Shown one piece after another: positions 5,399 to 56,215 of a stretch of 64,000 nucleotides of DNA. The stretch covers positions 1-64,000 of IMG/VR virus record IMGVR_UViG_3300012931_000759; one strand, given 5' to 3'. How positions within the stretch are numbered: position 1 is the stretch's first letter; the number at the start of each line of letters is the position of its first letter. The notes below the pieces were generated by a model. The model had not been told where the DNA came from. It saw nothing but the letters and a program-made list of their open reading frames with translations, and searched no databases. Made by a program: the position numbers and the translations under genes.

Positions 5399-5533
5399 TG
5401 TACGGCTGAAAATAGATGCCTTGACAGTTTCGTACATACAGGCCCAAACAAGGTTCTCATCAAATACTTCTTTGTATAGAGCCCTGAAAATGTTTCCACC
5501 TTTATACAAAAAGTATTGATAGAAAGGCTCATT

Positions 5534-5995
5534 ATGAGATTTGTTCTTGGAGATGTTACCAAACCACAAGGCGAAGGACTAAAAATAATAGCCCATGTCT
5601 GTAATGATGCTAATGGCTACGGATCAGGCGTGGCTGGAGCTATAGCCAAATGCTGGCCTGAGGCCAAATTAGCCTATCATAGGTGGCACGCCAAGGCCGA
5701 GAATTTCGCGCTGGGCATGGTCCAGCTGGTCAAGCTTCCGGATGGGATCATCGTCGCAAACATGGTGGCCCAGCACGGGTACGCCTACAAGGGCCATCCG
5801 GCCATCCAGTATCCTGCACTCCACATGTGCCTGTCCAAGGTCGCGAAGCGCGCCAAGGAGTTGGGAGCCTCCATACATTGCCCGCGTATAGGGTGCGGAC
5901 TGGCTGGAGGGACATGGGACAAGGTCGAGCCCATTATCCTCGAGACCATGGACGGTGTCGATGTGACGGTGTACAATTTTCGGGAAGATGTGTAA
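5534..5995 (+). CDS. Macrodomain protein (ADP-ribose hydrolase, TARG1/DarG-like)
   Basis: GDVT, IIAHVCND, GSGVAGAI, IHCPRIGCGLAGGTW. Confidence 0.9.
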   Translation: MRFVLGDVTKPQGEGLKIIAHVCNDANGYGSGVAGAIAKCWPEAKLAYHRWHAKAENFALGMVQLVKLPDGIIVANMVAQHGYAYKGHPAIQYPALHMCLSKVAKRAKELGASIHCPRIGCGLAGGTWDKVEPIILETMDGVDVTVYNFREDV

Positions 5996-25026: not shown

Positions 25027-25904
25027 CCGTGATGGAAAAAAACGCGGCGTTCGAAGACATGGTTGGGCATTTCATCGGCGTCCCGACAAAGTGCGACAAG
25101 CCCGTGTCATGGGCCATGTGCGGAGACGGTCTTTGGGAAATCCGTAGGAATTCCCTCGGGATCTTCCGTAGGCACGTGGCCGAGGCGGCAATTCCTGGCC
25201 TCCCATCGGGACTCGAGGAGGGGTTTGACCTCGCGCTGCCGAAGGTGCCGGTCTCCCTCTTGTGGCAGACTGTATCTTTTTTCCGACACGTGTACTCGCT
25301 TCATCAGAGCGAGGCAGCTGTGCGCGTAGTGTGGAACCGCAAAACCAGGAAATACCTGCTCGACTGTCCGTCGCAGGACGTGAGCGCAGCCCGGTGTAAT
25401 TTCGACAGGCACAAGACCATCGAGAATTCCGTGGTGGTGGCGGAGATCCATAGTCACGGTCAGATGACCGCCGGGTTCTCCGGAACAGACGACAAGGACG
25501 AACTTGCCGACCGATTCTACGGCGTTGTCGGGAAAGTGCTCGACTTTTTCCCCCAGATGACCTTCCGCCTGGCCATCGGCGGCAACCACCTGGACGTTGA
25601 TATCTGCGATCTGTTCGACACGGCAAACGACCCGATGCTGGGTGCCAAGTTCCCGCTTGGCTGGATCGACCTAGTAAGGAAGCGGGAAGTGAAACCTCTC
25701 CGGTTTTCCAAAGGGCTGCGGAGGTTTCTCGATGATCCGGATGACCCGGAAAACGAAAGATCCCTGAGCTGTGATTCCGTGTTTGGGTCCGATGCGAATG
25801 GCGACAACCCCACCGATGAAGAGATGTGGGACGCCATGGATGTCATCGAAGCCGAGGAGGACGAGGAGCAGGAACAATGGCGAAAATATCAAAGAAGGCG
25901 GTAG
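25023..25904 (+). CDS. JAB/MPN metallo-isopeptidase (PRTRC protein A-like)
   Basis: LPKVP, SEAAV, EIHSHGQMTAGFSGTDDKDE, YGVVG. Confidence 0.9.
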   Translation: MTVMEKNAAFEDMVGHFIGVPTKCDKPVSWAMCGDGLWEIRRNSLGIFRRHVAEAAIPGLPSGLEEGFDLALPKVPVSLLWQTVSFFRHVYSLHQSEAAVRVVWNRKTRKYLLDCPSQDVSAARCNFDRHKTIENSVVVAEIHSHGQMTAGFSGTDDKDELADRFYGVVGKVLDFFPQMTFRLAIGGNHLDVDICDLFDTANDPMLGAKFPLGWIDLVRKREVKPLRFSKGLRRFLDDPDDPENERSLSCDSVFGSDANGDNPTDEEMWDAMDVIEAEEDEEQEQWRKYQRRR

Positions 25905-26770
25905 AGGCGCCAGTCTTGCCGGATATCAAGGCCATGAGCGGGTTCCAGCGGCCGCAAACTATCCTGGTGGTGGGATGCGGTGGAACAGGTGCCTACGTAG
26001 TCGGCCATCTGGCTCGTCTGGTGGCCGTCCTGAACCAGGCGCCAAGCGCGCCATACCAAGGATTTCACATCGTCCTGGCCGACGGGGACAAGGTGGAGCG
26101 CAAAAACCTGGAACGACAGCATTTCATCCAGAACGACCTCGACCTAAACAAGGCGGAAGTCCTGGCCACCAGGTACTCCGGGGCGTTTGGTATTGAGATC
26201 CGCGCTATCACATCTTACATCGAGGATATCTACATCATTGAGAGCGTTGCTCCACAGCTGGTGATCGGCTGCGTGGATAACAACGCATCAAGACGTGTAA
26301 TCCACGAATGGATGCTCTACAATCGCGAATACTGCCCAGACCGATTCTGGATCGACTCTGGCAACGAGGAAAATTCTGGACAGGTCGTGTGCGGGTTTGG
26401 TCCTAACTACTCTCAGGGTTCACAGAGCGATGACGAGGATAGCGGCTACAAGTTCAGCCTGCCGATGGTGACGGAGGTATACCCCAATCTGATGAAGGCC
26501 GGAGAGGACGAGAAGTTTGCCTCGCAGATGAGCTGCGCCGAGCTGGCCCAGGCAGCGCCCCAGAACATGATGACCAACATTACTGCGGCCACGATCATCC
26601 TGAATTTCGCGCAGAAGATTCTGCGCGGCAAGGCCCTGCGGACCCATGGGGCCATTTTCTCGGTGGACAATTCCTTCCGGACGCTTCTCAACACGCCGGA
26701 GAACCTGGACAAGGTCAACTCCAAGCGGCGGAGAAGCTGGGAGCAGACAGTACTAGTACAGACGATCTGA
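25877..26770 (+). CDS. ThiF/E1-like activating enzyme (PRTRC type)
   Basis: GCGGTG, DGDKVERKNLERQ, NKAE, GCVDN, WIDSGNE, SCAE. Confidence 0.9.
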   Translation: MAKISKKAVEAPVLPDIKAMSGFQRPQTILVVGCGGTGAYVVGHLARLVAVLNQAPSAPYQGFHIVLADGDKVERKNLERQHFIQNDLDLNKAEVLATRYSGAFGIEIRAITSYIEDIYIIESVAPQLVIGCVDNNASRRVIHEWMLYNREYCPDRFWIDSGNEENSGQVVCGFGPNYSQGSQSDDEDSGYKFSLPMVTEVYPNLMKAGEDEKFASQMSCAELAQAAPQNMMTNITAATIILNFAQKILRGKALRTHGAIFSVDNSFRTLLNTPENLDKVNSKRRRSWEQTVLVQTI

Positions 26771-27146: not shown

Positions 27147-27206
27147 AGCAATTCTACCAGCTCATCGTACACTCTGTACAGATTGCTTAAACCGGAGCAG
27201 GATATA

Positions 27207-28556
27207 ATGTATTCCCTGAAAACAGACCTCTACCAGATAGCCATGATGGCCGGGTACTTTCATGGCGGAATGGCCGATAAGGTTGTGACCTGCGAGGCCT
27301 TCGCCCGCAAGCTGCCATCAAAACGCCGGTTCCTGGTCATGGCCGGCACCGAGGAGATCCGCGAGACGCTCGTCGGTCTGTGCTTCATGGGCACGGACAT
27401 CGAGTTTCTGCGGAGCATTCCGGCGCTGCGCAAGGTCATGACGCCAGCTTTCGAAGAGTGGCTGCTCAATTTCCGATTCACCGGTGACATGTGGGCCATG
27501 GCCGAGGGCGAGATCGTCTTCCCAGGCGAGCCGCTGGTTAGGATCACGGCGCCGGTCGCGCAGGCCCAACTTGCCGAGACCATGGTCCTGTCAGTCCTCA
27601 ATCACGACATGAGAGTTGCCTCGAAGGCGGCCAGGATCGTCCTGGCTGCGCGCGGCAAGCCGCTCATGGAGTTCGGCACGCGCCGGACGCACCACGAGGC
27701 TGCTCTCTACTCTGCGAGAGCTGCCTATCTGGCTGGATTCTCGGGGACATCCAACGTGGAGGCTGGCCTGCGATTCGGAATCCCGGTCATGGGCACCGTA
27801 GCTCACATGTGGACCATGGTCCATCAATCAGAGGCGGACGCTTTCAAGAAGTGGTCGGAACTGTGGGACAATCCGACTTTTCTGATCGACACCTACGACA
27901 CACTGCGCGGAGCTAGGCTGGTGGCTGGGATCAGGAACGCCTCCATGGTGAGGATCGATTCCGGGGACCTCTTGTCTCAATCGAAACTCGTAAGGTACAT
28001 TCTCGATGAAGGCGGATGTAAGGCAGGCATCGTTGTCTCCGGGGACCTAGACGAATACGCGGTCCATGAGCTTGTCTCATCAGACGCGCCAATCGACAGC
28101 TTCGGGATCGGCACTAAACTGGTCGCTCCGGACGACGCGCCATCTCTTGGGATCGTGTACAAGGCTGTCTACGACGAGACGGAGGCCAGGCCGCTCATGA
28201 AAACCTCGGGCGGCAAAGCAACCATGCCTGGCAGGAAACAGGTTTTCCTCGACCAACGCGAGGGCGGCTGGACCCATCTAGTCGCCTTGGACGGGGAGCT
28301 GGAGTCATCCGAGCTGCTCAGCCCACTGCTCGACAGGCATATCGCTGGCGGATTCATCGTGGACGGAGTGCGCGATGTGACCCTAGAGGTGTCGAGACGG
28401 TACTGTAACGCGGCGCTCGGATCGCTTTCGGCCCTTCCGGTCGGATACGACCTTTCGTCTATACTAGAGCCGAGCGTCGGCGTCCCGGTCAAGGCACACG
28501 ACAGCCTTACCAAAATGTTCGTGTCGGCGCGTTGCGCCATGGAGTCCGACGAATGA
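27207..28556 (+). CDS. pncB: Nicotinate phosphoribosyltransferase
   Basis: TDLYQIAM, EFGTRR, GTSNV, GTVAH, LIDTYD, VRIDSGD, FGIGT, GIVYK. Confidence 0.92.
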   Translation: MYSLKTDLYQIAMMAGYFHGGMADKVVTCEAFARKLPSKRRFLVMAGTEEIRETLVGLCFMGTDIEFLRSIPALRKVMTPAFEEWLLNFRFTGDMWAMAEGEIVFPGEPLVRITAPVAQAQLAETMVLSVLNHDMRVASKAARIVLAARGKPLMEFGTRRTHHEAALYSARAAYLAGFSGTSNVEAGLRFGIPVMGTVAHMWTMVHQSEADAFKKWSELWDNPTFLIDTYDTLRGARLVAGIRNASMVRIDSGDLLSQSKLVRYILDEGGCKAGIVVSGDLDEYAVHELVSSDAPIDSFGIGTKLVAPDDAPSLGIVYKAVYDETEARPLMKTSGGKATMPGRKQVFLDQREGGWTHLVALDGELESSELLSPLLDRHIAGGFIVDGVRDVTLEVSRRYCNAALGSLSALPVGYDLSSILEPSVGVPVKAHDSLTKMFVSARCAMESDE

Positions 28557-29461
28557 TGGAGCTGCTTTGGGGACGAGGAGGTGGACACACGATGTTCGAT
28601 CCCTATTCCCTCCAGCATGTGGTGTGGTTCTTCGCGATTACGGTCGCGCTGGCTGCACTGCGGTTCAGGCACTTGTGGGCATGGGTCCTCGGATTGGCGG
28701 CCCTGTGGGAAGTTGCCGAGTGGTGGATCGTCGACAACCTACCAGGGTTCCCCTTCGTCGGTCGTGAGGATATGTTGAACAAGGCGATAGGCGACCCGAT
28801 CAGCGACCTCGCCGGGTTCGCGCTTGGCCTGGTTGCCATGCGCGCCGTCCACCTGGTCATGAGCCGAAAGCCAGATTCGTTTGTCATGCTCCTGGAGCGG
28901 GCGAAGCGTTTGGCTGAGAAGGCGCACAGTGGGCAGAGATATGGCAGTTTTCCGTACACGCATCACCTTTTTGGAACCTGGGATGTGCTCGAGAAGTTCT
29001 GTTTCACCGGCAGAGAGCATGACAAGCCAAGGAGAGAGCGTAGTCGACGCCTGATCCTGGCTGCCATTCTACATGATACGCTGGAGGATACTGACCTGAC
29101 ATATGGAGAACTTGAAGACAACTTCGGGCGTGAGGTTGCTGATTTGGTTTTTGCCGTGACCAACGAGCCGGGAGCGAACCGCAAGGAGCGCTTCCTTAAG
29201 ACATACCCGAAGATCAAGGCTCACCCAGATGCTACAATATTAAAGCTGGCCGACAGGATCGCGAACATAATTCATGCCCTACAGTCAAACTGGGACATCC
29301 TGGTAATGTACAGGAAGGAATGGCCCATTTTCGAGCGCGAACTCCGGCGTCCGGGGGAGTGCGACCCAATGTGGGCGTATCTGGAGTCCATTTTGATACC
29401 CACGGATTCCGCTGGACAACAAGGTGCCAAAGCACCCTTTTTGGAGAACAAACATGGATGA
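28553..29461 (+). CDS. HD-domain (p)ppGpp hydrolase-like protein (Mesh1/SAH) with N-terminal membrane segment
   Basis: HSGQRYG..PY..H, AILHDTLEDT, LKLADRIAN; hydrophobic first ~100 aa. Confidence 0.8.
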   Translation: MMELLWGRGGGHTMFDPYSLQHVVWFFAITVALAALRFRHLWAWVLGLAALWEVAEWWIVDNLPGFPFVGREDMLNKAIGDPISDLAGFALGLVAMRAVHLVMSRKPDSFVMLLERAKRLAEKAHSGQRYGSFPYTHHLFGTWDVLEKFCFTGREHDKPRRERSRRLILAAILHDTLEDTDLTYGELEDNFGREVADLVFAVTNEPGANRKERFLKTYPKIKAHPDATILKLADRIANIIHALQSNWDILVMYRKEWPIFERELRRPGECDPMWAYLESILIPTDSAGQQGAKAPFLENKHG

Positions 29462-29906
29462 GAAAAGGCCACAGCCCGCCTGGCGGCGGGACAGTCAGCA
29501 GGGGCGGAGGGATGATCGCGGACAGCGTCGCGACCAGCGCGACAGACGTCGGCAAGACAGCCCTCCGCCAGAGAGACGCGCCCCGGTGGTGGGGCCGCTT
29601 GAGGTCGAGGTCTACAACAACGATGTCGGACAGGCTCTGAAAGTTCTCAAAAACAAATTGGCAAAAGATGGGATCCTAGCAGAACTCAAGGCGCGCCGCC
29701 ATGCGGAAAAGCCTTCCGAAAAGAAAAGGCGCAAACATCGGGAAGCCCTGAAGCGTTTGCGGAAATCAAAAGGTAAACGTCGTCAGGGAGGTTGGAGACC
29801 TGATAGACCAAAGGCTTCCGAGTCCAGACCAATTCGGGAATCGGCCACGCCTGTTGACCAAATCGCAAATGCGCCAGCAGCATCGGATATAAAGGATCCA
29901 AAGTAG
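29454..29906 (+). CDS. rpsU: Ribosomal protein bS21 with low-complexity extensions
   Basis: VEVYNNDVGQALKVLK...GILAELKARRHAEKPSEKKRRK. Confidence 0.85.
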   Translation: MDEKRPQPAWRRDSQQGRRDDRGQRRDQRDRRRQDSPPPERRAPVVGPLEVEVYNNDVGQALKVLKNKLAKDGILAELKARRHAEKPSEKKRRKHREALKRLRKSKGKRRQGGWRPDRPKASESRPIRESATPVDQIANAPAASDIKDPK

Positions 29907-31467: not shown

Positions 31468-31515
31468 CTCTGTTCTGGCATTGTGTCGTTTTTTGACAAG
31501 ATTTGGAAGAGGACG

Positions 31516-32562
31516 ATGCGAACAGTTAGCAGCCTAGTGGCTCTAGTTTTCCTTGTTGCTACCTTTGCGGCTTGCGACGACGAATCATCCCTGCCTTATG
31601 TGCATGTCGACAGCGGAGTGACCGATGTGGGAATGCCTAGCGTTCCGAATACGACATCCTACCCGCGCTATCTGTCCTGGGCCAACATCGACACGGACGG
31701 AGATGGGATCGGTGAGAACTACATCACCTCTGTAAAGAGACAGTCCTGCTCTGATTGCTATATGTATGTAGCAACGGCACTTGTAGAGGCTAGATGGCAG
31801 ATCGACCACAAGGCTGCCGTGTCCCTCGACCTATCCGAGCAGAACATTCACAACTGTATGAAAATACCATGCGATGGCGTAGGGGATCTGTGGTGGATGT
31901 TCGACTATATACGGAATTACGGTGTGATGCCCGAGGAGAATATGCCGTCTGGCATGTGGCTTCCTTCCTGCGAGAACTGCCTTGGGATCGCATGGAGCGG
32001 AATCGGACCCCTTTCGATACGTAATGTACCGTTCTACCGCATCACAAAGTACGACACACTTCCATTCCAGAAAGAATACGCGAAGCGCAAGGATGCGCTG
32101 GTTGCCGCGCTCCAGGAGGGGCCTGTAGGAATAGGGATTAACTCCTGGTATGGATACACAAACTACAACGGCGTTCTATATTGCGATGATCCTAAACCTG
32201 TAGGATCCGGGCATGTTGTCCTCGTAGTCGGCTACCTCGAAAGCGGGATGGCTTTTCTGGTGAAAAACAGCCATGGCGAAGGAAAGCTGATCACTATGGT
32301 CTTCGCGGGCGGTGACAAGTGTGGATTTGCCTCCGAGATGATCAAGCTCTCGCCCGGCAGCGTCTATATCTCGTGGGGATGGGGCGAGACGTTTTGCTAC
32401 TCCACGCTTGACAGCGACGGAGATGGTGTCCCCAATTCGCATGACAATTGTCCATGGAATTCAAATGCTGATCAGATGGACTCCGACCTGGACGGATGGG
32501 GAGACGCATGCGACCGTTGTCCAAAGGACAAAGGCCCTACAGGGTACTACTGTTCCCCTTAA
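31516..32562 (+). CDS. Papain-like (C1) cysteine peptidase lipoprotein with thrombospondin type-3 repeats
   Basis: FAAC lipobox, [40 protein letters not shown]...DGWGDACD. Confidence 0.8.
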
Positions 32563-34629: not shown

Positions 34630-34992
34630 ATGCTGGAAAGAAAAGATTGGTTCGACAGCCTTTTCCATGATTTTCTTGGTCTCAGGGATGTGCCGATGGA
34701 TGTGAGGGAGAACGACAATGGGTTCGAGGTCGAGGTAGACCTGCCCGGGGTCGAACCGGCCGACATCGACATCCAGGTATTAGATGGTAAATTGTACATT
34801 AAAGCTGAGCGTAAGTGGGCGAAATCGGGCGTAAAAGCGGCGTTCAGTCGTTCGTTTCACGAAACATTCGTCCTGCCGACGAGCGTTGATTCCTCAGGAA
34901 TCACAGCCACATATACACAAGGCGTGCTCAAGGTGGCCATCCCTAAACGAACCGATTCGTCGGCAAGGAAGGTGGAGGTGAAGGCGGTCTGA
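34630..34992 (+). CDS. Small heat-shock protein (Hsp20)
   Basis: MDVRE...DLPGV...FSRSF...LP...A.YTQGVLKVAIPK. Confidence 0.92.
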   Translation: MLERKDWFDSLFHDFLGLRDVPMDVRENDNGFEVEVDLPGVEPADIDIQVLDGKLYIKAERKWAKSGVKAAFSRSFHETFVLPTSVDSSGITATYTQGVLKVAIPKRTDSSARKVEVKAV

Positions 34993-35092
34993 CTTTTCCA
35001 TAAGATCCGCTTAGATGGAGCCTGTGGCTGAATGGCTCTATCAATTTTTGGGCATTATTGGCAGAAGGTAAGCCTCGATTTTGGAGGTACCT

Positions 35093-35521
35093 ATGACTGC
35101 CACTGTTCAAGAAAGTGTTGGAAAAGTCCAAAAGATCTTGAGGGTTTGGGAGAAGATCACAAAGCGTTTGCCGCGCACATACCCTAGGGCTTCCTTAGTT
35201 TTCCATGCGGACGAAAAGCGGCTCATGGAGTACTTCTTCGTCTTCTATGAATGTTCAGACGAAGAACGCAACAACCCGCCATATGCATTCTGCGACGCAA
35301 ACACGAACACGGTTCATGTACATACCACGATGGCTGAGTGTCCTATCAGAGAGATCGCCGGTTATCTACTACATGAAATAGGCCATCTTCGAGCTTTCCA
35401 GAAATATGGCGACAATGATCCTAGAGCGCATGACCCCAACGAGAAGGTTGATGAAGCGTATGCCTGTCGATTTTCTTCCCGATGGGTTTCCCGTCTTTGT
35501 AAAGAGGGATCCTTAAGATGA
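35093..35521 (+). CDS. Zincin-like metallopeptidase domain protein
   Basis: LLHEIGH...E..A; GGAGGT RBS. Confidence 0.6.
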   Translation: MTATVQESVGKVQKILRVWEKITKRLPRTYPRASLVFHADEKRLMEYFFVFYECSDEERNNPPYAFCDANTNTVHVHTTMAECPIREIAGYLLHEIGHLRAFQKYGDNDPRAHDPNEKVDEAYACRFSSRWVSRLCKEGSLR

Positions 35522-35584: not shown

Positions 35585-35616
35585 GGGGCGCGCCGTTAGG
35601 GCGCGCCCTTTCTTTT
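35585..35616 (+). terminator. GC hairpin with T-rich tail upstream of the PARP gene
   Basis: GGGCGCGCC gttag GGCGCGCCC TTTCTTTT. Confidence 0.55.
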
Positions 35617-35643: not shown

Positions 35644-37122
35644 ATGGGCGCATCGATGAAGGTCAAAGCCTGGACGGACGGGGAAAAAGGCCAACCATCT
35701 TTCCCATCTAATTTCTCTGTCACTAAACGTTGGGAGGGTAGCTGTACCAGCTTGGCAAAAAATAGCAATAAATTCTTCCACATAGAGGTACAGGTTGCCC
35801 TAAACGGGCAAGCTCGCATTTACACGGTGTATGGTCGTGTAGGAAACAGCGGCGCACGAGAGTTTCGGTATTACTCTTCGGAGGCTGCTTGTTTGTCGGA
35901 CTATGAAGCACTGATCCACAAAAAACGCGATCGGAAAAAGGAGCCTTATACGGAGATCGACCTGGCCATCACGTCCGTTGGCTCCGAGGGTGCAAAGGCA
36001 ATCACCAAGCCGATGACTGGCATCTCGGCCTCGTCCGCTCCGGAGCAGAAAAGCACGCTCCATGCCGAGATACAACGGTTGGTGCGCCGATGGTTCGGGG
36101 ATACAGGACACTTCGTCGAAATGAACCTCAAATGCCCACTGGGCCAGCTGAGTGTCGAGCAAATCGACAAGGGGCGCGCCGTCCTGGATGAGTGTCGCAA
36201 CCGGATCAACACAAAAAGGAAAACCGATGAGGCCGAGTGGGATATGCTGACGTCCCAATTCTACAGCCTTGTACCTCATGTTCTCCCACGAAAAATCGAC
36301 GCTAGTGCCCTGCGGCTCGATGCCATAGACCGTATTATGGCAAGATCGGATATTCTTGACACTTTCCTTGACGCCAAGAATGTAGCCTCGGTTCTGGCTA
36401 AAGGCACGTCGGCGGATGCGCAGTATGCCAAACTACAGGCAAAGATGGAGTGGATGGATCCGCAGGATCCTGTTCGCCAATGGATAGAAAAACTTGTCCA
36501 CGAAACAAGGGCAAAGAACCACGCAGGTCTAGGCAGGCTCAAGGTGTTCAATGTATTCAGACTTTTGCGCAATGGGGAACTGGATCATTTTTCCGCCTCG
36601 CTCGAACGGATAGGCAGAGAAGTCAAAGGCAAAGGCCAGAAGCCAAGGTTTACCACCTTAGAACGCCCTGATTTGAGCAAAGACGAGCAGCAGGCTTTCG
36701 TGAATGCTAATGTCTGGCCCTTGTGGCACGGGACGCAGCCACAGAACATGGTCGGCATCATCTCGGCTGGACTGAAGATCAGACCTTCCGGATCGGTTTA
36801 CTCTGGCAGTATGTTTGGTGATGGAGCTTACTTTGCCGAGTCTTTTAGTAAGAGCGCAAACTATTCTGGTTGTAGGGGATCTTACTGGAGTAGAGATAGC
36901 GGGGAAGACAGAGCATTCGTGTTCTTGAACGATGTAATCATAGGCAATCCGCATATCGTATACACCTCCCAGTTTTTCCATGAGCCACCGTTCGGCACGC
37001 ATAGTGTGTATGCTCTGCCAGGACGGGGACTTTACAACTCGGAGAACATCACCTACAAACAATCTGGAGCTGGACAGCAGAACAGACTGCGCTATATCGT
37101 GGAGTTTCAATCGAACCAGTAG
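35644..37122 (+). CDS. PARP-like ADP-ribosyltransferase (WGR + helical regulatory + catalytic domains)
   Basis: NSNKFF...YGRVG (WGR), LTSQFYSLVPH, LWHGT, GSMFGDGAYFA, KSANY, NSE (H-Y-E triad). Confidence 0.9.
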   Translation: MGASMKVKAWTDGEKGQPSFPSNFSVTKRWEGSCTSLAKNSNKFFHIEVQVALNGQARIYTVYGRVGNSGAREFRYYSSEAACLSDYEALIHKKRDRKKEPYTEIDLAITSVGSEGAKAITKPMTGISASSAPEQKSTLHAEIQRLVRRWFGDTGHFVEMNLKCPLGQLSVEQIDKGRAVLDECRNRINTKRKTDEAEWDMLTSQFYSLVPHVLPRKIDASALRLDAIDRIMARSDILDTFLDAKNVASVLAKGTSADAQYAKLQAKMEWMDPQDPVRQWIEKLVHETRAKNHAGLGRLKVFNVFRLLRNGELDHFSASLERIGREVKGKGQKPRFTTLERPDLSKDEQQAFVNANVWPLWHGTQPQNMVGIISAGLKIRPSGSVYSGSMFGDGAYFAESFSKSANYSGCRGSYWSRDSGEDRAFVFLNDVIIGNPHIVYTSQFFHEPPFGTHSVYALPGRGLYNSENITYKQSGAGQQNRLRYIVEFQSNQ

Positions 37123-37131
37123 GAGGAAGAG

Positions 37132-37503
37132 GTGAATCCAACCGAGATATTCGTAGACAAGACTCGCAGGCTCGTTCTTCCGGGCGACTACATCGTCTAT
37201 GGGCACGCCCTTGGGAGATGCGCCGGGCTCCAATACGGTCGGGTGATCGCCGTCCTGCCCCCGGTTCGGGACCCGTACGGTGGAGTCTGTGCGAAGATCA
37301 GGGTACAGGGAGTCGACGCCCACGACAACTGGCTCGGCTACTCGAAGAAGAACAAGGGATACAAGGCCGGCAAGGTCGAACTCCTGAGACCAGGGACGCT
37401 GTGCTACCCGTCCCGCGTCCTGAAGGTCGAGCCGCACCAGATCCCCGAGCAAGTGCTGGCGCTGCTCGAGCAGGTCAAAATCCCGGACGCGGCGCAGCAA
37501 TGA
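37132..37503 (+). CDS. Hypothetical protein
   Basis: AGGAGG RBS. Confidence 0.55.
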   Translation: MNPTEIFVDKTRRLVLPGDYIVYGHALGRCAGLQYGRVIAVLPPVRDPYGGVCAKIRVQGVDAHDNWLGYSKKNKGYKAGKVELLRPGTLCYPSRVLKVEPHQIPEQVLALLEQVKIPDAAQQ

Positions 37504-39065
37504 TCTGGAGAAAGCTGATGAATTACCTGAGGAAAACGGCTACTTTGGTGGATGCCGCCAAACAGATGCTCGAGGACGCCGGGTTCGGAGACCATGAGTC
37601 GTTTTTCGCGCGACGCGTCAAAGACGGGGTCCTCAACCTGGCCAACCAGTTCCAGCAGGAGAACTATTCGACGGTGGTGGGCAGGCTGGTCGTGGCCCTG
37701 TTTTCCAGGGTCGCGCGCGGCTCTCCGCCGACGCCGGATTTCCTGAAGGAGGTCTGGCGGGAGATCGAGGCGTTCGCCAAGGACGAGCCGTACAACGAGA
37801 AGGAGGAGAGGGGGCACTGGATACAGAAGCGGTACCCCATGCTCAATTGGGTCGGAGATCTCCACAAGCACATCAGCGATGAGGTGCTCCAGCGGCCGAA
37901 GGCGCAGACGTTCTCCGGCGCGCCGCTCGTCAGGGATGACCAGGAGCCTGCTCCTGTTCTTGTGGATGACGAGGTCTCCAAGCCGTCGCGCCAAGTGCGC
38001 GTGTCGGAACTCAGGGCCATGGCCAAGGACGGGAAGGTAATCGCGGCAATCAAGCTGTACCGCGATGCCACCGGAAAAGGTCTAAAGGAATCCAAGGATT
38101 TCGTGTTGGCATTGCGCGACGAACCGACCGAACTCGTGGACGACAGGCTGCCGCCTCTCGACCATTACGGATTCGGGGCTCCAGTGGTTCCGTTCGTAAA
38201 GCTCGACAGCTACGGCTCAGAATCCATGGCCCTGGCGCCCGGCAAGGCGTCCGGGACGATCGGCGCCAAAAACGTCACAGTCGACCTGGCCGCGAAGAAG
38301 GAAATCGAGGGGAAAATGGACGCAAAGAGCAAGATCGTCGGGGTCATCAGGGAGTTCTGCAGGAACATGGAGTCGTTCACCAGCCTGGACGTCAGCAACA
38401 AGGCCAAATCCGAAGGTCTGGTGGCCAGGCACCGCGAGGTTGCCGAGCTGGTGCGCGGCGCCCACGCGGATGGCGTGATGGACACCTACGGGTACGTCCG
38501 CGACCTGATCGACGTCACCCTGCCTGGCGGGGGAAGCGCGCAGGCGTACCTCTACCGGCACACTACCGTTCCGGCGGACGACTACAGGAACCGCGCCCAG
38601 GTGGCGCTCAAGCCGCAGCTCCAATCGGCTCCGCAGGCGTACGACGATGACGGTCTACCGCCCCTGCCGACGCCGATCATCCCGCAGAATCTCGTCAACC
38701 TACCGCAGCCCCCGACCTTCGCCGCGCCCCCGGCTCCGCCGACCGTCGGCAGGCTCACCCGCGTGCTGAACACCTCGTCCGTGACCCGCACTCAGAAGGG
38801 CGACGGGCGCCTCGAGGTTCCGCACGTCTGGCTGGCCAGGCTCGGCTGGCAGGTCGGCGACACTGTGTCGGCGGTCGTAGATGGAAATGGCCTTGTCCTG
38901 AAAACCACAGTCCAGCTAGGCGAACAGGTTGTGCGGCAATTCACCGTCGACAGGTGGAACCGCATCAGGATCACTACCAAAGCTCTCAGCGAAGTTGGCA
39001 TCCATTTTGGCACCGGTGGACAGCATATCATGACGCTCCGCACGGGCGACATCAGGATCGACTGA
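37500..39065 (+). CDS. Multidomain protein with L7/L12 C-terminal-like domain, Pro-rich linker and AbrB-like C-terminus
   Basis: KVIAAIKLYRDATGKGLKESKDFV; GRLEVP...LGWQVGD. Confidence 0.6.
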   Translation: MIWRKLMNYLRKTATLVDAAKQMLEDAGFGDHESFFARRVKDGVLNLANQFQQENYSTVVGRLVVALFSRVARGSPPTPDFLKEVWREIEAFAKDEPYNEKEERGHWIQKRYPMLNWVGDLHKHISDEVLQRPKAQTFSGAPLVRDDQEPAPVLVDDEVSKPSRQVRVSELRAMAKDGKVIAAIKLYRDATGKGLKESKDFVLALRDEPTELVDDRLPPLDHYGFGAPVVPFVKLDSYGSESMALAPGKASGTIGAKNVTVDLAAKKEIEGKMDAKSKIVGVIREFCRNMESFTSLDVSNKAKSEGLVARHREVAELVRGAHADGVMDTYGYVRDLIDVTLPGGGSAQAYLYRHTTVPADDYRNRAQVALKPQLQSAPQAYDDDGLPPLPTPIIPQNLVNLPQPPTFAAPPAPPTVGRLTRVLNTSSVTRTQKGDGRLEVPHVWLARLGWQVGDTVSAVVDGNGLVLKTTVQLGEQVVRQFTVDRWNRIRITTKALSEVGIHFGTGGQHIMTLRTGDIRID

Positions 39066-43122: not shown

Positions 43123-44742
43123 ATGTCGAAAATTGTCAAGTACGACGATGAAGCACGCCAACTGATCAAGAGCGGCGTGGACAAGCTCGCAAACGCCGTG
43201 AAGGTTACGCTCGGCCCAAAGGGCCGAAATGTCCTGCTACGCAGGGAATACGGCATGTCACACGTCACAAAGGATGGGGTGACCATTGCCAAGGAGATCA
43301 CTCTACGCGACCAGTTCGAGGACATGGGTGCACAGATGGTGAAGCACGCAGCCCAGACCACATGCGACGAGGCTGGGGACGGCACGACCACCGCAGCTCT
43401 GCTGAGCCAGGCCATCTACGCCAGCGGGTTGAAGCTGATGGCGGCTGGACACAATCCAATGGATCTGAAGCGCGGCATCGACAAAGCTGTCACCAAGGTG
43501 GTCGAAACTCTCGGCGGCCTCGCGCAAGAGACCAGGGATCCGAAATTGATTGCGCAGGTTGGCACAATCAGTGCCAACGGCGACACTACGATCGGCGGCC
43601 TTATCGCACAGGCGATGGAGAAGGTGGGGCGCGACGGCGTCGTCACCATCGAAGAGGCCAAGGGGCTCGATACGACGCTCGAAGTGACCGAGGGCATGCG
43701 GTTCGACCGCGGCTATCTGTCCTCCTATTTCGTCAATGTGCCCGAACGCGCCGAAGCTGTGCTCGACAACTGCCTGGTCCTGATCAGCGCGAACCGGATC
43801 GACAACGTACAGGATCTGGTGGAGCTGCTCAACACCGTGGCGAACGCGCAGGCACCGCTGCTAATCCTGGCGGATGACGTGGGCGGCACCGCCCTGCCAG
43901 CCCTGGTGATCAACAAGATGCGCGGCCTGTTGAAGGTTTGCGCGGTGAAGGCACCCGGATTCGGAGACAGGCGGCTCGACATGCTGAAGGATATTGCCGT
44001 CCTCACCGGAGCCACTCTGTTCTCTGAGGAAACCGGGGTCAAAATTCCGACAGCTACCGTCGGCATGCTTGGAAGGGCTGAGAAGGTCGTGATTACCAGG
44101 AACCACACGACCATCATCGGCGGCATGGGCACCAAGGAGGCCATCCGGGAGAGGATCGAGCAGGTGAAGCTCGACATCGAGCAGGCCACGAGCGAGTGGG
44201 ACAAGGGCAAGGCCCGCGAGCGCCTGGCCAAGCTGCTTGGGGGAGTGGCCGTGGTGCGTGTCGGAGCGCCGACCGAGGCCGAGATGAAGGAGAAGAAGGA
44301 CCGGGTCGAGGACGCCATGAACGCCACCAAGGCGGCCGTCGAGGAGGGTATCGTCCCTGGCGGCGGCGTGGCCCTGCTCCGCTGCTCCAAGTCCGTGGCC
44401 GACTTCATCGGGTCGCTGCCGGAAGTCGAACAGGCGGGAGCCCGCGTCATCCTGGAGGCCCTGCGGGCCCCGCTGAGGCAGATCGCGGCCAATGCCGGCG
44501 AGAGCCCCGACATGGTTGTCGCCACGGTTGATGGCGAGGTTCCGAACTATGGTTGGAACGCCGCCACCGGAGAGTATGTGGACATGATGGAGGTCGGCAT
44601 CATCGACCCGAAGAAGGTCGTGCGCTGTGCGCTCCAGAACGCCGCCAGTGTGGCGGGCCTGCTGCTGACCACCGAAGCGATGGTTGCGGACGATCCGGAC
44701 GAGGAGAAGCCGAAAGGCGGCCCCCCGCAGATGGGGATGTAG
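43123..44742 (+). CDS. groL: Chaperonin GroEL
   Basis: VTLGPKGRNV, GDGTTTA, GMRFDRGY, KAPGFGDRR, EGIVPGGG. Confidence 0.98.
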   Translation: MSKIVKYDDEARQLIKSGVDKLANAVKVTLGPKGRNVLLRREYGMSHVTKDGVTIAKEITLRDQFEDMGAQMVKHAAQTTCDEAGDGTTTAALLSQAIYASGLKLMAAGHNPMDLKRGIDKAVTKVVETLGGLAQETRDPKLIAQVGTISANGDTTIGGLIAQAMEKVGRDGVVTIEEAKGLDTTLEVTEGMRFDRGYLSSYFVNVPERAEAVLDNCLVLISANRIDNVQDLVELLNTVANAQAPLLILADDVGGTALPALVINKMRGLLKVCAVKAPGFGDRRLDMLKDIAVLTGATLFSEETGVKIPTATVGMLGRAEKVVITRNHTTIIGGMGTKEAIRERIEQVKLDIEQATSEWDKGKARERLAKLLGGVAVVRVGAPTEAEMKEKKDRVEDAMNATKAAVEEGIVPGGGVALLRCSKSVADFIGSLPEVEQAGARVILEALRAPLRQIAANAGESPDMVVATVDGEVPNYGWNAATGEYVDMMEVGIIDPKKVVRCALQNAASVAGLLLTTEAMVADDPDEEKPKGGPPQMGM

Positions 44743-45767: not shown

Positions 45768-46575
45768 ATGAAAGACTCTTTAGGCAACCGCATGAAACAG
45801 TATGAGTCGTTGAGCGATATCTCCCTTATGCGTCGCACTCCCGTTTTGGTGCGTCTTTGATGGCAAGGGCTTCTCCAGGCTGACCAAGCGGCTCAAGCTC
45901 GACAAGCCGTTCGACATGTGGTTTCTGGACGCCATGGCCGACACGATGTTGGCCGTGGCGTCCCAGGTTCAGGGGTGCGTGGTTGGATACACGCAGTCAG
46001 ACGAGATCAGCCTCGTGCTGGTCAACCACCAGTCCATCGACACCGAGCCGTACTTCGGCAACCGCGTGCTGAAGATCGCAAGTGTCACAGCAAGCATGGC
46101 AACCGCCAGGTTTAACCGCTGGCTGCGCGTGCGCGACGAAAAGGCAGAGGCTTGCTTCGACTCCAGGGTGTTCACGGTGCCATCCGCCATGGAGGCTACG
46201 AATGCCCTGGTCTGGCGTCAACAGGACTGCGTGAGGAATTCGATCCAGTCGGCTGCATACTACGAGATCGGCGCATCAAAGGGACGCAAGACAACCCAAG
46301 GTATGATACATGGACTGGATACCTCGAAACTCCAAGAACTCCTGTTCCAGGAGGTCGGAATAAACTGGAGCACGAAATATCCGGCGGAGCTGAAAAGGGG
46401 AACTGTGGCGTACCGCAAACCGGTGGAGGTCGAGACACCAAACGGCAAAGCCGTCAGGATGTGCTGGATCAGGGAGGCGGCTCCAGTGTTCCAGTCGAAG
46501 GATGGAAGGGCCTGGCTGCTGTCTCTGATGGAGACCGCGCCCAAAGACGGCAAGGAGCCGACCGATGGCGAGTGA
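45768..46575 (+). CDS. tRNA-His guanylyltransferase Thg1-like protein (frameshift near 45857)
   Basis: LGNRMKQYE...VRL[+t]DGKGFSRLT...YTQSDEISL...FDSRVF...WRQQDC.RNS. Confidence 0.88.
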
Positions 46576-47629
46576 GATGATCCAAAGGTTGGCGAGGCTG
46601 GTCGCCCATAGGGACGGGACCCTCCTGTACCCGAAAGGCGACGGCCGTGTCGAGATACCACACGGCATAGTCCGGTTCATGGGATGGAGTGATAAGTCCA
46701 CGGTGTGGATAGGCAGGAGTCCTGGGTGCCTCGTCCTCTCAAACGAAAGGCAGGACGATACCGTTGGGCGGGTGGCAGTGAGCATGGAACGGGTCAGGGT
46801 GCCGATGTCCATCCTGAAGTCCGCCGCGATGGGCGACGGTCCTGTGGTGGTGTCCATAGACCTATCTGGAATCATCGTGGTGCGCAGGCATCTGGAGGGA
46901 TCGGCCGATCTGGCGGATCTCGAGGGTGCGTTCGGGGAGGCCGGGGAGCCGGTCTGCCAACGGCTTCTCGGCATTCTGGGCAGCTACAGGCAGGCCATAG
47001 ATGCTGAAGAACAGCCCATCGCTACCGTGGTGACGCCAAAGCCAATCGGTGTCCCGCAATCCTTGACCGAGTGGAAGTACGATATCATCAACAACGGGAA
47101 ACCCAAGCTTTTCTTGATGAACATGAACAAGCCCACGATCATCAGAGTTGTCGGCATGCCGTTCGCGTTCCAAGCCCATTGGGTTCCAGCCCAAGACCAC
47201 ACAGCGGGCAGGATCGTGCCACATTCCGACGGATGTTCGCTGTGCAGCATAAGGGCCCCCGAACGCATGTCGCTTGTTCCCGTCATCAAGAAATCTGATG
47301 GGCGTTCCGAGCACGGTTTCCTCCTGGCGCAGGAGGACCTGCGTTCGAAGATAGCCAGTCGGTTGGCTGGTAGGAACCCAACAGATTTTGATCTTGTTCT
47401 GTACTTTGCGCCCTTTCAGGATGGGATGTGCTCGGTGTACATAGTCCCTCCGGAAGTGCTGCCGGACGATCTTGTCAAGCTGGCGCAAGCAGCTTGCGCC
47501 GATCCAGATGGGTTCGTGGCGGAGACGTTTGGAAGCGATCCGCCGGAGGGGCGCCCGGCAAGGGCGCCAATGTTCATTGTCGAGGGGCATTTTGCCGAAG
47601 ACGCTAAACCCCGCAACCTTGCGAAGTGA
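46565..47629 (+). CDS. Hypothetical protein
   Basis: 354-aa ORF; AHW...CSLC. Confidence 0.6.
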   Translation: MASEMIQRLARLVAHRDGTLLYPKGDGRVEIPHGIVRFMGWSDKSTVWIGRSPGCLVLSNERQDDTVGRVAVSMERVRVPMSILKSAAMGDGPVVVSIDLSGIIVVRRHLEGSADLADLEGAFGEAGEPVCQRLLGILGSYRQAIDAEEQPIATVVTPKPIGVPQSLTEWKYDIINNGKPKLFLMNMNKPTIIRVVGMPFAFQAHWVPAQDHTAGRIVPHSDGCSLCSIRAPERMSLVPVIKKSDGRSEHGFLLAQEDLRSKIASRLAGRNPTDFDLVLYFAPFQDGMCSVYIVPPEVLPDDLVKLAQAACADPDGFVAETFGSDPPEGRPARAPMFIVEGHFAEDAKPRNLAK

Positions 47630-52149: not shown

Positions 52150-53049
52150 ATGATCAAGGATGGTCTCAAACTTATTGATATGCTGGTCGGTGCCATGCGT
52201 CAGCAGGCTTCTGAGGCAAGGACATCGAAGGCCGAGGTTGATATATCCGGAGGTGTGGATAGCGCAGTTGTCGCGGCCTTGGCATGTCGTGCATTCGGTA
52301 AAGACAATGTCATCGGTGTGTACAGTTCGATTAATTCTTCAGCAGAGTCTTGTCAATTGGCTGGGCTGGTGGCCGATAAGTTCGGTTTCAAACTCCTGAA
52401 ACTCGACCTGTCTGACGCGTATCGCCAAATAGTCATGGCCATTGCCACCGAGTTTGGACGTCTTGGTATCCCGTTTCCGGACCAGAATGACCCTCGACAA
52501 CGCACGGCGTTCGGGGGGTTGAGAAGCTGTCTGCGCGCCCCAGTGGGGCGCTTTGTGAACAGGGCGTTTGGTGGTATCCGCGAGGGTACTGGCAATAGGG
52601 ACGAGGATGAGTTGATCAGATTTTTCCAGAAGGGCGGCGATGGCGAGGTGGACAGTAACTGGATCGAGGGTCTGTTCAAGGGCGAGGTGTGGGAGTTGGC
52701 CGCATATCTTGGAGTTCCGCAGGAGATTATCGACGTAGCCCCGACGCCCGACCTGTGGGGAGGAACTGTACATACTGATGAGGGCGAATTGAAGGAGCTT
52801 ACTGGTGTGTCCCTGACCTACACCCGTCCAGGCGGACCAATGGGTACAATAGAGTGGGCCAGTAGAGAGAACGCGAGGAACGGCTGTGTCACGCGGAGCG
52901 GCTCGAATCCTGGCTGTATGGGATACAACGAGGCCCAGTCGACCATTATCCTGGCGATGCGAAAGTTGGAGCGATCCAGTAGGCACAAGACTTGTATGCC
53001 ACCATGTCTTCCGCGCGAGCGACTTCTCAAGGCGGGCGTGGTCGAATAG
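52150..53049 (+). CDS. nadE: NH3-dependent NAD+ synthetase
   Basis: ISGGVDSAV, GTGNRDE, GDG, KGEVWELA, PTPDLW, TDE. Confidence 0.88.
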   Translation: MIKDGLKLIDMLVGAMRQQASEARTSKAEVDISGGVDSAVVAALACRAFGKDNVIGVYSSINSSAESCQLAGLVADKFGFKLLKLDLSDAYRQIVMAIATEFGRLGIPFPDQNDPRQRTAFGGLRSCLRAPVGRFVNRAFGGIREGTGNRDEDELIRFFQKGGDGEVDSNWIEGLFKGEVWELAAYLGVPQEIIDVAPTPDLWGGTVHTDEGELKELTGVSLTYTRPGGPMGTIEWASRENARNGCVTRSGSNPGCMGYNEAQSTIILAMRKLERSSRHKTCMPPCLPRERLLKAGVVE

Positions 53050-56139: not shown

Positions 56140-56142
56140 AAT

Positions 56143-56214: not shown

Positions 56215-56215
56215 C

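Follow-up and report, generated by a model that had tools for sequence, protein, structure and literature searches.

A predicted WGR-type PARP of a jumbo phage and its conserved winged-helix partner gene

Introduction

Why a phage should carry a gene resembling a DNA-break-activated PARP, and which of its other genes would work with that PARP, is the question raised by a 64,000-nt stretch of DNA from the IMG/VR virus record IMGVR_UViG_3300012931_000759 (positions 1 to 64,000; hereafter, the window). DNA-damage signalling by PARPs is seen as an essentially eukaryotic trait; to our knowledge, in vitro activity has been found for only two bacterial PARPs, and no PARP of a phage has undergone biochemical study. 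The PARP gene of the window (35644..37122, plus strand) encodes 492 aa with WGR, helical (HD, PARP_reg), and ADP-ribosyltransferase (ART) domains, and its reading frame is the one given in the original prediction. According to that prediction, the PARP may be the writer, a macrodomain the eraser, and two NAD biosynthesis genes the substrate supply of ADP-ribose signalling.

Results

The full record is 340 kb long (CheckV, 84%), with a coding density of 93% and about 80% of the coding on one strand. Together with its status as an IMG/VR virus record, genes for a tail sheath, a baseplate wedge, and a tail fibre identify the contig as a contractile-tailed jumbo phage, and the earlier concern that it might prove cellular was not borne out. 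The window also carries genes for an ATP-dependent DNA ligase, an XPD-like helicase, and a DHH/RecJ-like protein. Further genes in the window encode Lon, GroEL, Hsp20, IF3, deformylase, bS21, tRNAs, and a SpoT-like HD hydrolase; huge phages typically carry gene sets of the Lon/GroEL/IF3/deformylase/bS21/tRNA kind.

All three PARP domains gave Pfam matches exceeding the curated cut-offs: the WGR domain (residues 35–97; 35746..35934; PF05406, E = 1.5e-11), the helical regulatory, autoinhibitory domain (HD; residues 137–258; 36052..36417; PF02877, PARP_reg, E = 1.5e-12), and the ART catalytic domain (residues 281–492; 36484..37119; Pfam PARP catalytic at 281–458, E = 1.2e-23), all on the plus strand. 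The HD directly precedes the ART domain and aligns with the PARP1 HD by both sequence and structure. The catalytic motifs WHGT (H362, codon 36727–36729), GAYFA (Y396, codon 36829–36831), and NSE (E467, codon 37042–37044) are all present, which agrees with the intact H-Y-E triad originally described. Residues H362, G363, Y396, Y407, and E467 were invariant in 45 family members and also in an alignment with canonical bacterial WGR-PARPs (for the triad, 45 + 7 sequences). Key ART residues (H362, G363, Y396, K403, S404, and Y407), among them the Gly, Ser, and Tyr of the nicotinamide pocket, follow the PARP1 numbering minus 500, and E467 corresponds to PARP1 E988. This catalytic Glu was placed by structural ranges and by alignment to the canonical bacterial PARPs, in which it matches the Glu of ‘DDEYVIY’/‘SEYLVY’; a PDB search with the C-terminal 63 residues alone returned only a chance match.

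The designation WGR holds for the domain, which is present and superposes on the PARP1 WGR domain in the model, but not for the literal Trp-Gly-Arg motif, which is spelled Y63-G64-R65-V66-G67 and, as YGRVG, is invariant across the clade. In the profile alignment, Y63 takes the place of W589, the Trp with which PARP1 stacks on the end of the DNA. The clade also has a specific insert of approximately 35 aa ahead of WHGT, and the acceptor loop, from ‘HSV’ to the catalytic Glu, is short (about 10 aa).

When an AF2 model of the PARP (pLDDT 85.5) was searched with Foldseek, the best matches were WGR-CAT chains of PARP1 bound to a DNA double-strand break (E = 1e-27, TM 0.65–0.72). With VIA-align, residues 137–492 matched PARP1 663–1009 (Z = 29.3, rmsd 2.5 Å) and residues 11–492 matched PARP1 537–1009 (Z = 28.7), which supports the proposal that the architecture is that of DNA-break-activated PARPs. 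With moderate confidence in the explanation as a whole, we consider from these alignments and the model that the gene probably codes for a minimal DNA-dependent ADP-ribosyltransferase of a jumbo phage, PARP2/3-like and competent for catalysis. The Tyr in place of the WGR Trp, an acceptor loop far shorter than in PARP1–3, and the clade-specific insert of ~35 aa speak against it. As for a polymer versus a single-unit product, the triad would allow elongation, but the acceptor loop is predicted to be as short as that of tankyrases; in PARP3, H-Y-E alone is insufficient for poly(ADP-ribose) synthesis.

We found 208 homologs of the PARP, many on contigs of 200–490 kb, and 50 related PARP loci in IMG/VR. 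Any PARP occurred in 16 of 50,697 phage records. In a second homolog search, the best 120 matches were all bacterial proteins. Contigs of huge phages carry this large PARP clade, within which chromosomal copies from Kofleriaceae are nested. Chromosomal homologs of myxobacteria share the YGR motif and the short loop; in a quick, midpoint-drawn tree, whose support values are SH-aLRT only, they are the sister group with weak support, and LR756511 lies on a long branch. Of the phylogeny against bacterial and eukaryotic PARPs proposed at the outset, this tree covers the bacterial side. The intact reading frame and the functional residues invariant among the 45 homologs, which share 44–86% identity, indicate purifying selection. 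Directly after the PARP, about a dozen related phages encode a T4 endoV-type glycosylase. Part of the synteny seen in related phages stems from common descent and not from selection, and tail-sheath relatives, considered as a PARP-negative comparison, were all PARP-positive when large and otherwise fragments.

The gene upstream of the PARP ends in a terminator-like hairpin (35585..35609, plus strand) with a 10-bp stem, 9 G-C pairs, and a T-rich tail. This hairpin was by far the strongest in a consensus scan whose total number of sites in the region was not above that of shuffles, and it suggests that a new transcription unit starts at the PARP. Preceded by a GGAGGAAGAGG ribosome-binding site, orf123 (37132..37503, plus strand) starts 9 bp beyond the PARP stop and encodes a small predicted protein conserved in the nearest relative only. 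Its stop overlaps (ATGA) the start of a gene for a PARP-associated partner of 521 aa (37500..39065, plus strand). Judging from the hairpin, the 9-bp gap, and the ATGA overlap, PARP, orf123, and partner apparently form one operon.

The partner has a conserved winged-helix domain (residues ~273–380; fold match, Z = 8.9) and an MraZ/AbrB-like double domain (residues ~425–521; MraZ-like fold match, Z = 8.4); an ESM-Atlas look-up with the partner domain returned weak winged-helix leads only. The partner C-terminus is MraZ/AbrB-like or ends in QPSLF, a motif similar to those that bind the beta-clamp. The conserved domain was found downstream of the PARP in 34 loci. We counted co-occurrence in 20 large PARP-bearing phage records, nine of them near-complete, and in 13 of the 20 the partner was single-copy and 1.3–4.7 kb from the PARP. 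It directly adjoins the PARP on chromosomal-looking contigs of Kofleriaceae, stands directly upstream of a PARP of only 24% identity in another myxobacterium, and lies between PARP and ARH (see below) in the distant phage LR756511. The partner thus adjoins PARPs in four independent contexts, and it had no match among the 50,697 phage records (tblastn). A complex prediction for PARP and partner scored 0.00, which is a verdict neither for nor against their interaction. We conclude that a previously unnoticed winged-helix partner gene travels with the phage PARP.

Outside the window, the genome encodes an ARH-family hydrolase (genome positions 97123-98223; PF03747, E = 4e-60, profile positions 1–287 of 287); among solved structures, DraG (E = 7e-25) and ARH3 (E = 3e-14) are closest to it, and its candidate specificities are Arg, Ser, and PAR. 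ARH was present in 12 of the 20 PARP-bearing records and in eight of the nine near-complete ones, yet in only 10 of the 50,697 phage records, and the best of these matches is 4 kb away from the one phage PARP that matches at full length. The PARP–ARH distance had a median of 18.6 kb in genomes of 200–480 kb; in the present genome, ARH lies 60 kb from the PARP among unrelated neighbours. No PARG (PF05028, PF10021) was found in the 340 kb of this ~84% complete record, with the PF10021 control positive in Deinococcus. These distributions point to ARH as a better eraser candidate than the macrodomain of the window. We also weighed a Nudix gene near ARH as a possible ADP-ribose pyrophosphatase partner but discarded it: the gene is joined to an NaeI-like nuclease in one fusion, beside a C5-methylase.

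The macrodomain itself (5516..5995, plus strand; probable true start, ATG at 5534) was confirmed where it had been predicted (Pfam Macro, 28.3 bits, cut-off 22). It belongs to the SCO6735/BT1257 (ALC1-like, DarG/TARG1-related) class, matching PDB 5e3b (SCO6735) with E = 1e-42 over residues 8–155 and 2fg1 (BT1257) with E = 2e-38. The equivalents of the SCO6735 catalytic Gln85 (codon 5771–5773) and of Val25 (codon 5597–5599) are kept, assuming a 20-residue tag offset of the PDB chain. SCO6735 efficiently removes DarT-type thymidine-linked ADP-ribose from DNA but acts poorly on auto-modified PARP1 (PMC9411070). SCO6735-type macrodomains occurred in 1,622 of the 50,697 phage records, nearly all without a PARP, as against 16 records with one, which indicates that this type works independently of a phage PARP. 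By analogy with SCO6735, the likeliest role of the macrodomain is counter-defence: as a separate enzyme, probably not dedicated to the PARP, it would strip DarT-type ADP-ribose from phage DNA.

Both NAD genes were likewise found at the positions first assigned to them (27207 and 52150), with scores above the NCBIfam cut-offs: a PncB-type nicotinate phosphoribosyltransferase (27183..28556, plus strand; TIGR01513, 397 bits, cut-off 297), probably starting with the ATG at 27207, and a single-domain, ammonia-dependent type NAD+ synthase, NadE (52150..53049, plus strand; TIGR00552, 88.6 bits, cut-off 63.65). A reading of the former, the NAPRTase-family gene at 27 kb, as a Nampt/Namat-type NAD-reconstitution enzyme was rejected because nicotinate phosphoribosyltransferase scored above cut-offs. 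The 340 kb contained no match to an NaMN/NMN adenylyltransferase (CTP_transf_like; NadD/NadR/NadM), with the control positive in 14 of 14 genomes; the Preiss–Handler route (PncB, NadD, and NadE) is therefore incomplete without the host. Together with host NadD, PncB and NadE would raise NAD+ generally. Such a boost would also be useful against NAD-depleting defences, which argues against the two genes being a dedicated supply line.

Discussion

We return to the idea that PARP, macrodomain, and PncB plus NadE form one integrated system of writer, eraser, and supply. The four genes all exist, share one strand within the same 64 kb, and recur together in the nearest complete relative (442 kb); moreover, SCO6735-class macrodomains are partly active on PARP-modified protein (PMC9411070), and a look for further NAD consumers (LigA, SIR2) in the genome found none. 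However, the macrodomain class is spread among phages far beyond the PARP, and its characterised relative favours DarT-modified DNA over PARP1-modified protein. The four genes also co-occur poorly: among the 20 large PARP-bearing records, Macro was found in 10 (above the cut-off in five), PncB in four, and NadE in nine. In the window, the macrodomain, PncB, and NadE lie 30, 7, and 15 kb from the PARP, with unrelated genes between, and the NadD/NMNAT step was not found in 340 kb. Thus, the genes named in the original prediction stand, and their integration into one system appears unlikely.

We tentatively propose, instead, that huge phages and some Myxococcota may share an undescribed module made up of a YGR-type WGR-PARP, a dedicated single-copy winged-helix partner, and an ARH replacing PARG, in which the PARP would sense breaks and reversibly modify the partner or adjacent DNA ends and so control replication, repair, or expression. 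In the mechanism that we favour with moderate confidence, the WGR (‘YGR’) domain would bind DNA nicks or ends; candidate lesions are intermediates of phage replication, recombination, or packaging, UV-excision nicks, and host-nuclease cuts. DNA binding would then unfold the autoinhibitory helical domain and open the NAD+ site, whereupon the PARP may ADP-ribosylate itself and DNA-bound proteins. The apparently co-transcribed wHTH/AbrB DNA-binding partner would be the prime candidate for a target or adaptor, and the ARH hydrolase may reset the ADP-ribose mark. If true, the three-part module would give viruses of prokaryotes their own equivalent of PARP-dependent damage signalling.

Another function to consider is host take-over, in which the PARP would modify host RNA polymerase, the translation apparatus, or nucleoid proteins, as T4 Alt/ModA/ModB do. 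Iyer et al. suggest such a role for jumbo-phage PARPs (PMC7824862), myoviruses are described as enriched in ARTs (PMC9503650), and the window is rich in host-remodelling genes (Lon, GroEL, Hsp20, IF3, bS21, and the SpoT-like HD hydrolase). Nevertheless, the PARP retains its WGR domain and autoinhibitory HD, which point to a DNA-lesion trigger rather than constitutive targeting; its gene is repeatedly linked with that of a DNA-binding partner and, in relatives, with that of the endoV-type glycosylase; and the same module occurs on bacterial chromosomes, where take-over would be senseless. We therefore consider this role quite unlikely for the PARP.

The substrate may also be DNA itself, with terminal phosphates at breaks being ADP-ribosylated to cap or mark phage or host ends, for example against exonucleases, and with reversal by ARH and/or the macrodomain. 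PARP1–3 modify DNA-end phosphates in vitro, and PARG, TARG1, MacroD, and ARH3 reverse this modification (as cited in PMC9411070). The phage would have comparable tools in its PARP2/3-like minimal architecture, its ARH3-related ARH, and its TARG1/DarG-class macrodomain. This is purely an analogy, however, and the broad, PARP-independent spread of the macrodomain weakens the link, so that DNA ends as the substrate seem to have only a slim chance.

Finally, that the contig is cellular or the PARP gene a decayed passenger with nothing phage-specific about it is hardly credible: although the window holds many ‘cellular’ genes (Lon, GroEL, IF3, deformylase, bS21, and tRNAs), close PARP homologs bear MAG labels (Patescibacteria, Kofleriaceae), and several related IMG/VR records are flagged ‘provirus’, the contig has the tail genes and the one-strand, 93% coding layout noted above, gene sets of that sort are typical of huge phages, and the PARP reading frame is intact with conserved functional residues.

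Phage PARPs are known from surveys; what is new here is the winged-helix partner and the pairing with ARH instead of a macrodomain. For the proposed break-sensing module, the wHTH partner and ARH provide concrete substrate or adaptor and eraser candidates, which have been missing so far for prokaryotic PARPs. An appealing but weakly supported ‘one system’ picture is corrected once the PARP is viewed apart from the macrodomain, which probably acts against DarT, and from the NAD genes, which would serve NAD+ upkeep in general. As a compact, zinc-finger-free WGR-HD-ART protein of 492 aa from a large conserved clade, the phage PARP would also be a tractable model for the WGR-HD allosteric switch and its evolution.

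Comparison with known systems

Human PARP2, PARP3, and the PARP1 core have the same order of WGR, autoinhibitory helical, and ART domains as the phage PARP (fold match, Z = 27–29), and PARP1 H862, G863, Y896, K903, S904, and Y907 are spaced identically in it. Sequence identity to human PARPs is only 21–31%, and the phage protein differs from them in that zinc fingers, a BRCT domain, and an N-terminal tail are all missing, in the Tyr that replaces the W of WGR, and in the extra ~35-aa insert before WHGT. Its acceptor loop is tankyrase-like at about 10 aa, whereas that of PARP1 has about 45.

The same three-domain layout is found in a prokaryotic setting in HaPARP of Herpetosiphon aurantiacus, which needs DNA for activity (PMC8120803), and in CdPARP of Clostridioides difficile CD160; both make PAR in vitro (PMC8120803, PMC5966428), and their sequences lie outside our alignment. 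HaPARP and CdPARP are paired with PARG, whereas in the phage neither type of PARG was found and ARH recurs instead. Compared with bacterial WGR-PARPs, the present clade sits mainly on huge-phage contigs. PARP-domain proteins of cultured phages (Xanthomonas XacN1, Klebsiella, Stenotrophomonas, and Cellulophaga; PHROG 23333) are homologous in the ART domain (31–40% identity, residues 355–489), but match the catalytic core only (26–67% of the query); the only full-length match (92%, 29% identity) was in the uncultured 595-kb phage LR756511.

NAD synthesis combined with a PARP in jumbo phages was already proposed in silico in 2021–2024 (PMC7824862, PMC9503650, PMC11662467). The ‘NAD-jumbo phages’ (Microbiome 2024, PMC11662467) and the phages of Iyer et al. 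(PMC7824862, PMC9503650) are proposed to combine pncB/nadE-type synthesis with enzymes that use NAD, one of them a PARP for DNA repair, and with Macro/ARG domains that remove ADPr; the wHTH partner, the PARP–ARH linkage, and the YGR/short-loop clade are not described in the available parts of these papers. Furthermore, nadD completes their Preiss–Handler cluster and was not found in the present genome (340 kb). The macrodomain matches SCO6735 and BT1257 over its full length, with the catalytic Gln and the subclass Val kept, but is phage-borne and without a DarT partner. T4 Alt, ModA, and ModB, which had been set apart from the present protein from the start, are indeed of another class: they are cholera-toxin-like ARTs with an R-S-E motif, whereas the phage PARP has H-Y-E and belongs to the diphtheria-toxin/PARP clade.

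Results and Discussion

We investigated the gene at window 35644–37122 (+), in which the original prediction had recognized a WGR-PARP with an intact H-Y-E triad. This reading was confirmed: the ORF is intact (492 aa), its WGR (residues 35–97, Pfam E 1.5e-11), PARP_reg (residues 137–258, E 1.5e-12) and PARP catalytic (residues 281–458, E 1.2e-23) domains all exceed the curated cut-offs, and the WHGT, GAYFA and NSE motifs place H362, Y396 and E467 where expected. In an alignment of 45 homologs (44–86% identity), H362, G363, Y396, K403, Y407 and E467 were invariant, and H362, G363, Y396, K403, S404 and Y407 correspond, at a constant offset of 500, to H862, G863, Y896, K903, S904 and Y907 of PARP1. 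An AlphaFold2 model built from the same alignment was confident (pLDDT 85.5, pTM 0.75); its top Foldseek matches (E 1e-27, TM 0.65–0.72) were PARP1 WGR-HD-ART chains on a DNA double-strand break, and VIA-align superposed residues 137–492 on 663–1009 of the PARP1 catalytic fragment (Z 29.3, rmsd 2.5 Å) and residues 11–492 on 537–1009 of PARP1 WGR-CAT on DNA (Z 28.7). The public gene call for this protein is 409 aa long, starting later and lacking the WGR domain. Judging from full-length homologs at 100% coverage, the 492-aa reading is the correct one, and WGR domains in this clade may be under-reported by automated annotation.

Sequence alignments with PARP1 end at about residue 459, short of E467, the loop that links the 'HSV' strand to the catalytic Glu being ~10 residues in the phage PARP and ~45 in PARP1, so other routes to the identity of E467 were needed. 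Myxobacterial chromosomal WGR-PARPs carry a canonical DDEYVIY/SEYLVY motif whose Glu aligns with E467, and the structural alignment with PARP1 extends through the last residue, E467 included; together these settle E467 as the catalytic Glu. The phage PARP is a genuine, PARP2/3-like, jumbo-phage-borne enzyme that is probably active; its activity, trigger, product and target are all inferred.

The record holding the window is an IMG/VR virus of 340,392 bp (CheckV completeness 84%), whose first 64 kb make up the window. It is 93% coding, with ~80% of ORFs on one strand, and its genes for a tail sheath, for tail-fibre proteins and for a subunit of the baseplate wedge (PHROG 6, E 1e-45) identify the contig as phage rather than cellular. 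Cellular-type genes in the window include Lon, GroEL, Hsp20, IF3, peptide deformylase, bS21 and seven tRNAs, and published huge phages have comparable content. The proteostasis set (AAA ATPase, full-length Lon protease, Hsp20 and GroEL) and a papain-family protease bearing thrombospondin type-3 repeats lie at 13139–16852, 34630–34992, 43123–44742 and 31483–32562; bS21, IF3 and peptide deformylase at 29424–29906, 47626–48159 and 48156–48662; a Thg1-like tRNA-His guanylyltransferase homolog at 45916–46575; a tRNA-His with the unusual anticodon ATG (ARAGORN call) at 58145–58219; and six more tRNAs at 55850–56638. Beyond the window, a NaeI-like restriction-endonuclease domain fused to a Nudix domain comes after a C5 cytosine DNA methylase (genome ~92567–94734), and a release-factor-like protein has PCRF and RF-1 domains (~94741–95439). 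Seven PARP-bearing records of 270–480 kb are labelled 'provirus', most being 97–100% complete by CheckV; the host-boundary call in them may have been confused by cellular-type huge-phage genes.

Of 208 PARP homologs found by a word-based search, most are ~490 aa long and share the three-domain layout; many lie on contigs of 200–490 kb. Fifty IMG/VR viral loci hold a PARP relative, 21 of them on contigs >200 kb. Among deposited phages, 16 records have a PARP-like ART, and the only full-length match was in the uncultured 595-kb phage LR756511 (92%, 29% identity). Signature peptides, which are clade-specific and leave distant PARPs outside the count, matched at only eight loci among 185,579 species genomes. 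One of these, a 6.4-kb "Berkiella" MAG contig, is a phage fragment; three Kofleriaceae MAG contigs (66–71% GC) carry PARP copies among ordinary cellular genes, a search for tail sheath in these MAGs found none, and the copies look chromosomal. PARP-domain genes occurred in 5 of 301 sampled genomes of that phylum, at 2–3 copies each, one on a 9-Mb contig. A quick maximum-likelihood tree of phage and bacterial PARPs, effectively unrooted, united huge-phage PARPs in one supported clade (SH-aLRT 98) with the Kofleriaceae copies nested within, and placed a myxobacterial group as its weakly supported sister.

A strong terminator-like hairpin (35585–35609) precedes the PARP gene. After its stop, a 9-bp gap containing a ribosome-binding site leads to a 123-aa ORF (37132–37503). 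Its stop codon shares an ATGA with the start codon of the next ORF, which encodes a winged-helix protein of 521 aa (37500–39065; hereafter, the partner); the three ORFs look co-transcribed. Just upstream of the PARP, a 146-aa ORF (35081–35521) has an HExxH-like 'HEIGH' motif; no family matched it, and only two related loci keep it close to the PARP.

The conserved domain of the partner (residues ~273–380) lies downstream of a PARP, on the same strand, at 34 loci, and the linkage recurs in four independent contexts: phages, Kofleriaceae, another myxobacterium and LR756511. The two genes are 10–300 bp apart in the nearest phage relatives, the partner follows the PARP by 22–29 bp in the Kofleriaceae contigs, and in a phage clade of 41–45% identity the partner is 145–190 aa long and 1.2–4.8 kb away. 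In the other myxobacterium, the partner is directly upstream of a PARP 24% identical to that of the phage, the order having changed and the adjacency been kept. Of 20 large PARP-bearing phage records compared for gene co-occurrence, 13 contained exactly one copy by the partner-family profile, always 1.3–4.7 kb from the PARP. A tblastn search with the window's partner domain found no match in 50,697 deposited phages, and the partner family lacks a Pfam entry. In the partner model (pLDDT 80), the closest structural match to the N-terminal winged helix was the DNA-binding domain of FurB (Z 8.9, rmsd 2.0 Å over 74 residues). The C-terminus is a double domain of MraZ/AbrB-like type (Z 8.4; Foldseek E 7e-3; Pfam MazE_antitoxin E 0.001), and it is MraZ/AbrB-like in Kofleriaceae too; at these moderate Z values of 8–9, the model assigns folds, not functions. 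The small versions (~145–190 aa) of most huge phages end in a low-complexity linker closing with DLWxxLFxxQPSLFPxK, of which QPSLFPxK resembles the bacterial beta-clamp-binding motif QL[SD]LF. Beta-sliding-clamp binding by these small partners is a candidate lead from this motif resemblance.

An ADP-ribosylglycohydrolase-family (ARH) gene lies at genome 97123–98223 (PF03747, E 4e-60), its closest solved relatives being DraG (E 7e-25) and ARH3 (E 3e-14); a genome search for PARG of either type found none. ARH was present in 12 of the 20 large records (eight of nine of those at least 90% complete), counts that come from related genomes and are not independent. Among the 50,697 deposited phages it turned up in just 10, and the best of these matches was in LR756511, 4 kb from its PARP; there, PARP, partner and ARH share one strand within 6.6 kb. 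In genomes of 200–480 kb, the nearest ARH copy was a median of 18.6 kb from the PARP.

Repair-type genes of the window encode an ATP-dependent DNA ligase, an XPD-like helicase and a DHH/RecJ-like protein. In about a dozen related phages, the PARP is directly followed by a pyrimidine-dimer glycosylase of the T4 endonuclease V type (Pfam Pyr_excise), 9–90 bp downstream in several and within 1.5 kb in more; that of the present genome, with an N-terminal extension of ~185 aa, is 30 kb from the PARP (genome 67690–68769). A SLOG/YpsA-like protein (genome 313370–313930) fell below the Pfam cut-off (E 6e-5), and 22 related loci have homologs 5–8 kb downstream of the PARP; sensing of NAD/ADPr derivatives has been proposed for SLOG domains.

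The original prediction joined the PARP to a macrodomain, PncB and NadE as writer, eraser and substrate supply. All these genes are real; support for the integrated system is partial. The macrodomain (5516–5995, probable start 5534; Pfam Macro 28.3 bits, cut-off 22) is the only one in 340 kb and has two close relatives of solved structure, SCO6735 (E 1e-42) and BT1257 (E 2e-38), and a more distant one in the ALC1 macrodomain. SCO6735 rapidly strips DNA of DarT-type thymidine-linked ADP-ribose and rescues cells from DarT; it depends on Gln85 and acts only weakly on auto-modified PARP1 (PMC9411070). The aligned catalytic Gln and subclass Val are conserved in the window macrodomain, taking an inferred 20-residue tag offset in the PDB chain. 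Of deposited phage genomes, 1,622 carry this macro type; most are Escherichia, Pseudomonas and Streptomyces phages that have no PARP. Among the 20 large records it was found in 10, above the cut-off in only five. Most economically, the macrodomain would act independently of the PARP, in counter-defence against ADP-ribosylation of DNA.

PncB (27183–28556, probable start 27207; TIGR01513 397 bits, cut-off 297) and NadE (52150–53049; TIGR00552 88.6 bits, cut-off 63.65) occurred in 4 and 9 of the 20 large records, respectively. Just upstream of PncB are three consecutive genes with PRTRC matches (protein B, protein A and a ThiF-family protein; 24334–26770), a ubiquitin-like activation cassette; directly after it is a SpoT/RelA-type HD hydrolase domain protein (28532–29461) that could act on (p)ppGpp or another alarmone. 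No NadD/NadR/NadM-type adenylyltransferase was found in the genome, the control being detected in 14 of 14 reference genomes. Because neither an NAD-dependent ligase nor a sirtuin was found in the genome, the PARP appears to be the only recognizable NAD+ consumer among the families tested, which leaves the supply idea some room. General NAD+ maintenance, also against NAD-depleting defences, matches the PncB/NadE distribution at least as well. The evidence points to an association of PARP, partner and ARH over an integrated writer/eraser/supply system, and to separate functions for the macrodomain and NAD genes.

The integrated idea is also not new, because jumbo-phage PARPs and NAD synthesis have been the subject of published proposals. 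Iyer et al. reported that a few jumbo phages have PARPs (PMC7824862), and in their later listing PART/PARP was one of the most frequent ART families of viruses (PMC9503650). In a 2024 proposal (PMC11662467), jumbo phages join pncB/nadD/nadE clusters to enzymes that use NAD, a "PARP1" damage sensor among them. The literature searched yielded no study of phage PARP biochemistry, and the portions of the jumbo-phage PARP literature consulted contain no description of the partner gene or the PARP-ARH pairing. Bacterial WGR/PARP_reg/PARP enzymes are described (PMC8120803): that of Herpetosiphon needs DNA, and the Herpetosiphon and C. difficile enzymes produce PAR, which their PARGs remove. Compared with PARP1–3, the phage PARP has tyrosine in place of the WGR tryptophan (Y63-G64-R65, invariant; Y63 aligned with PARP1 W589) and a ~35-residue insert ahead of WHGT, and its short acceptor loop is tankyrase-like. 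One group of myxobacterial PARPs, the weakly supported sister group in our tree, has the same YGR motif and short loop, whereas a second group has WGRVG and a long loop. The PARP is a further case of a known kind of enzyme; what may be new is the partner gene and the PARP-ARH pairing.
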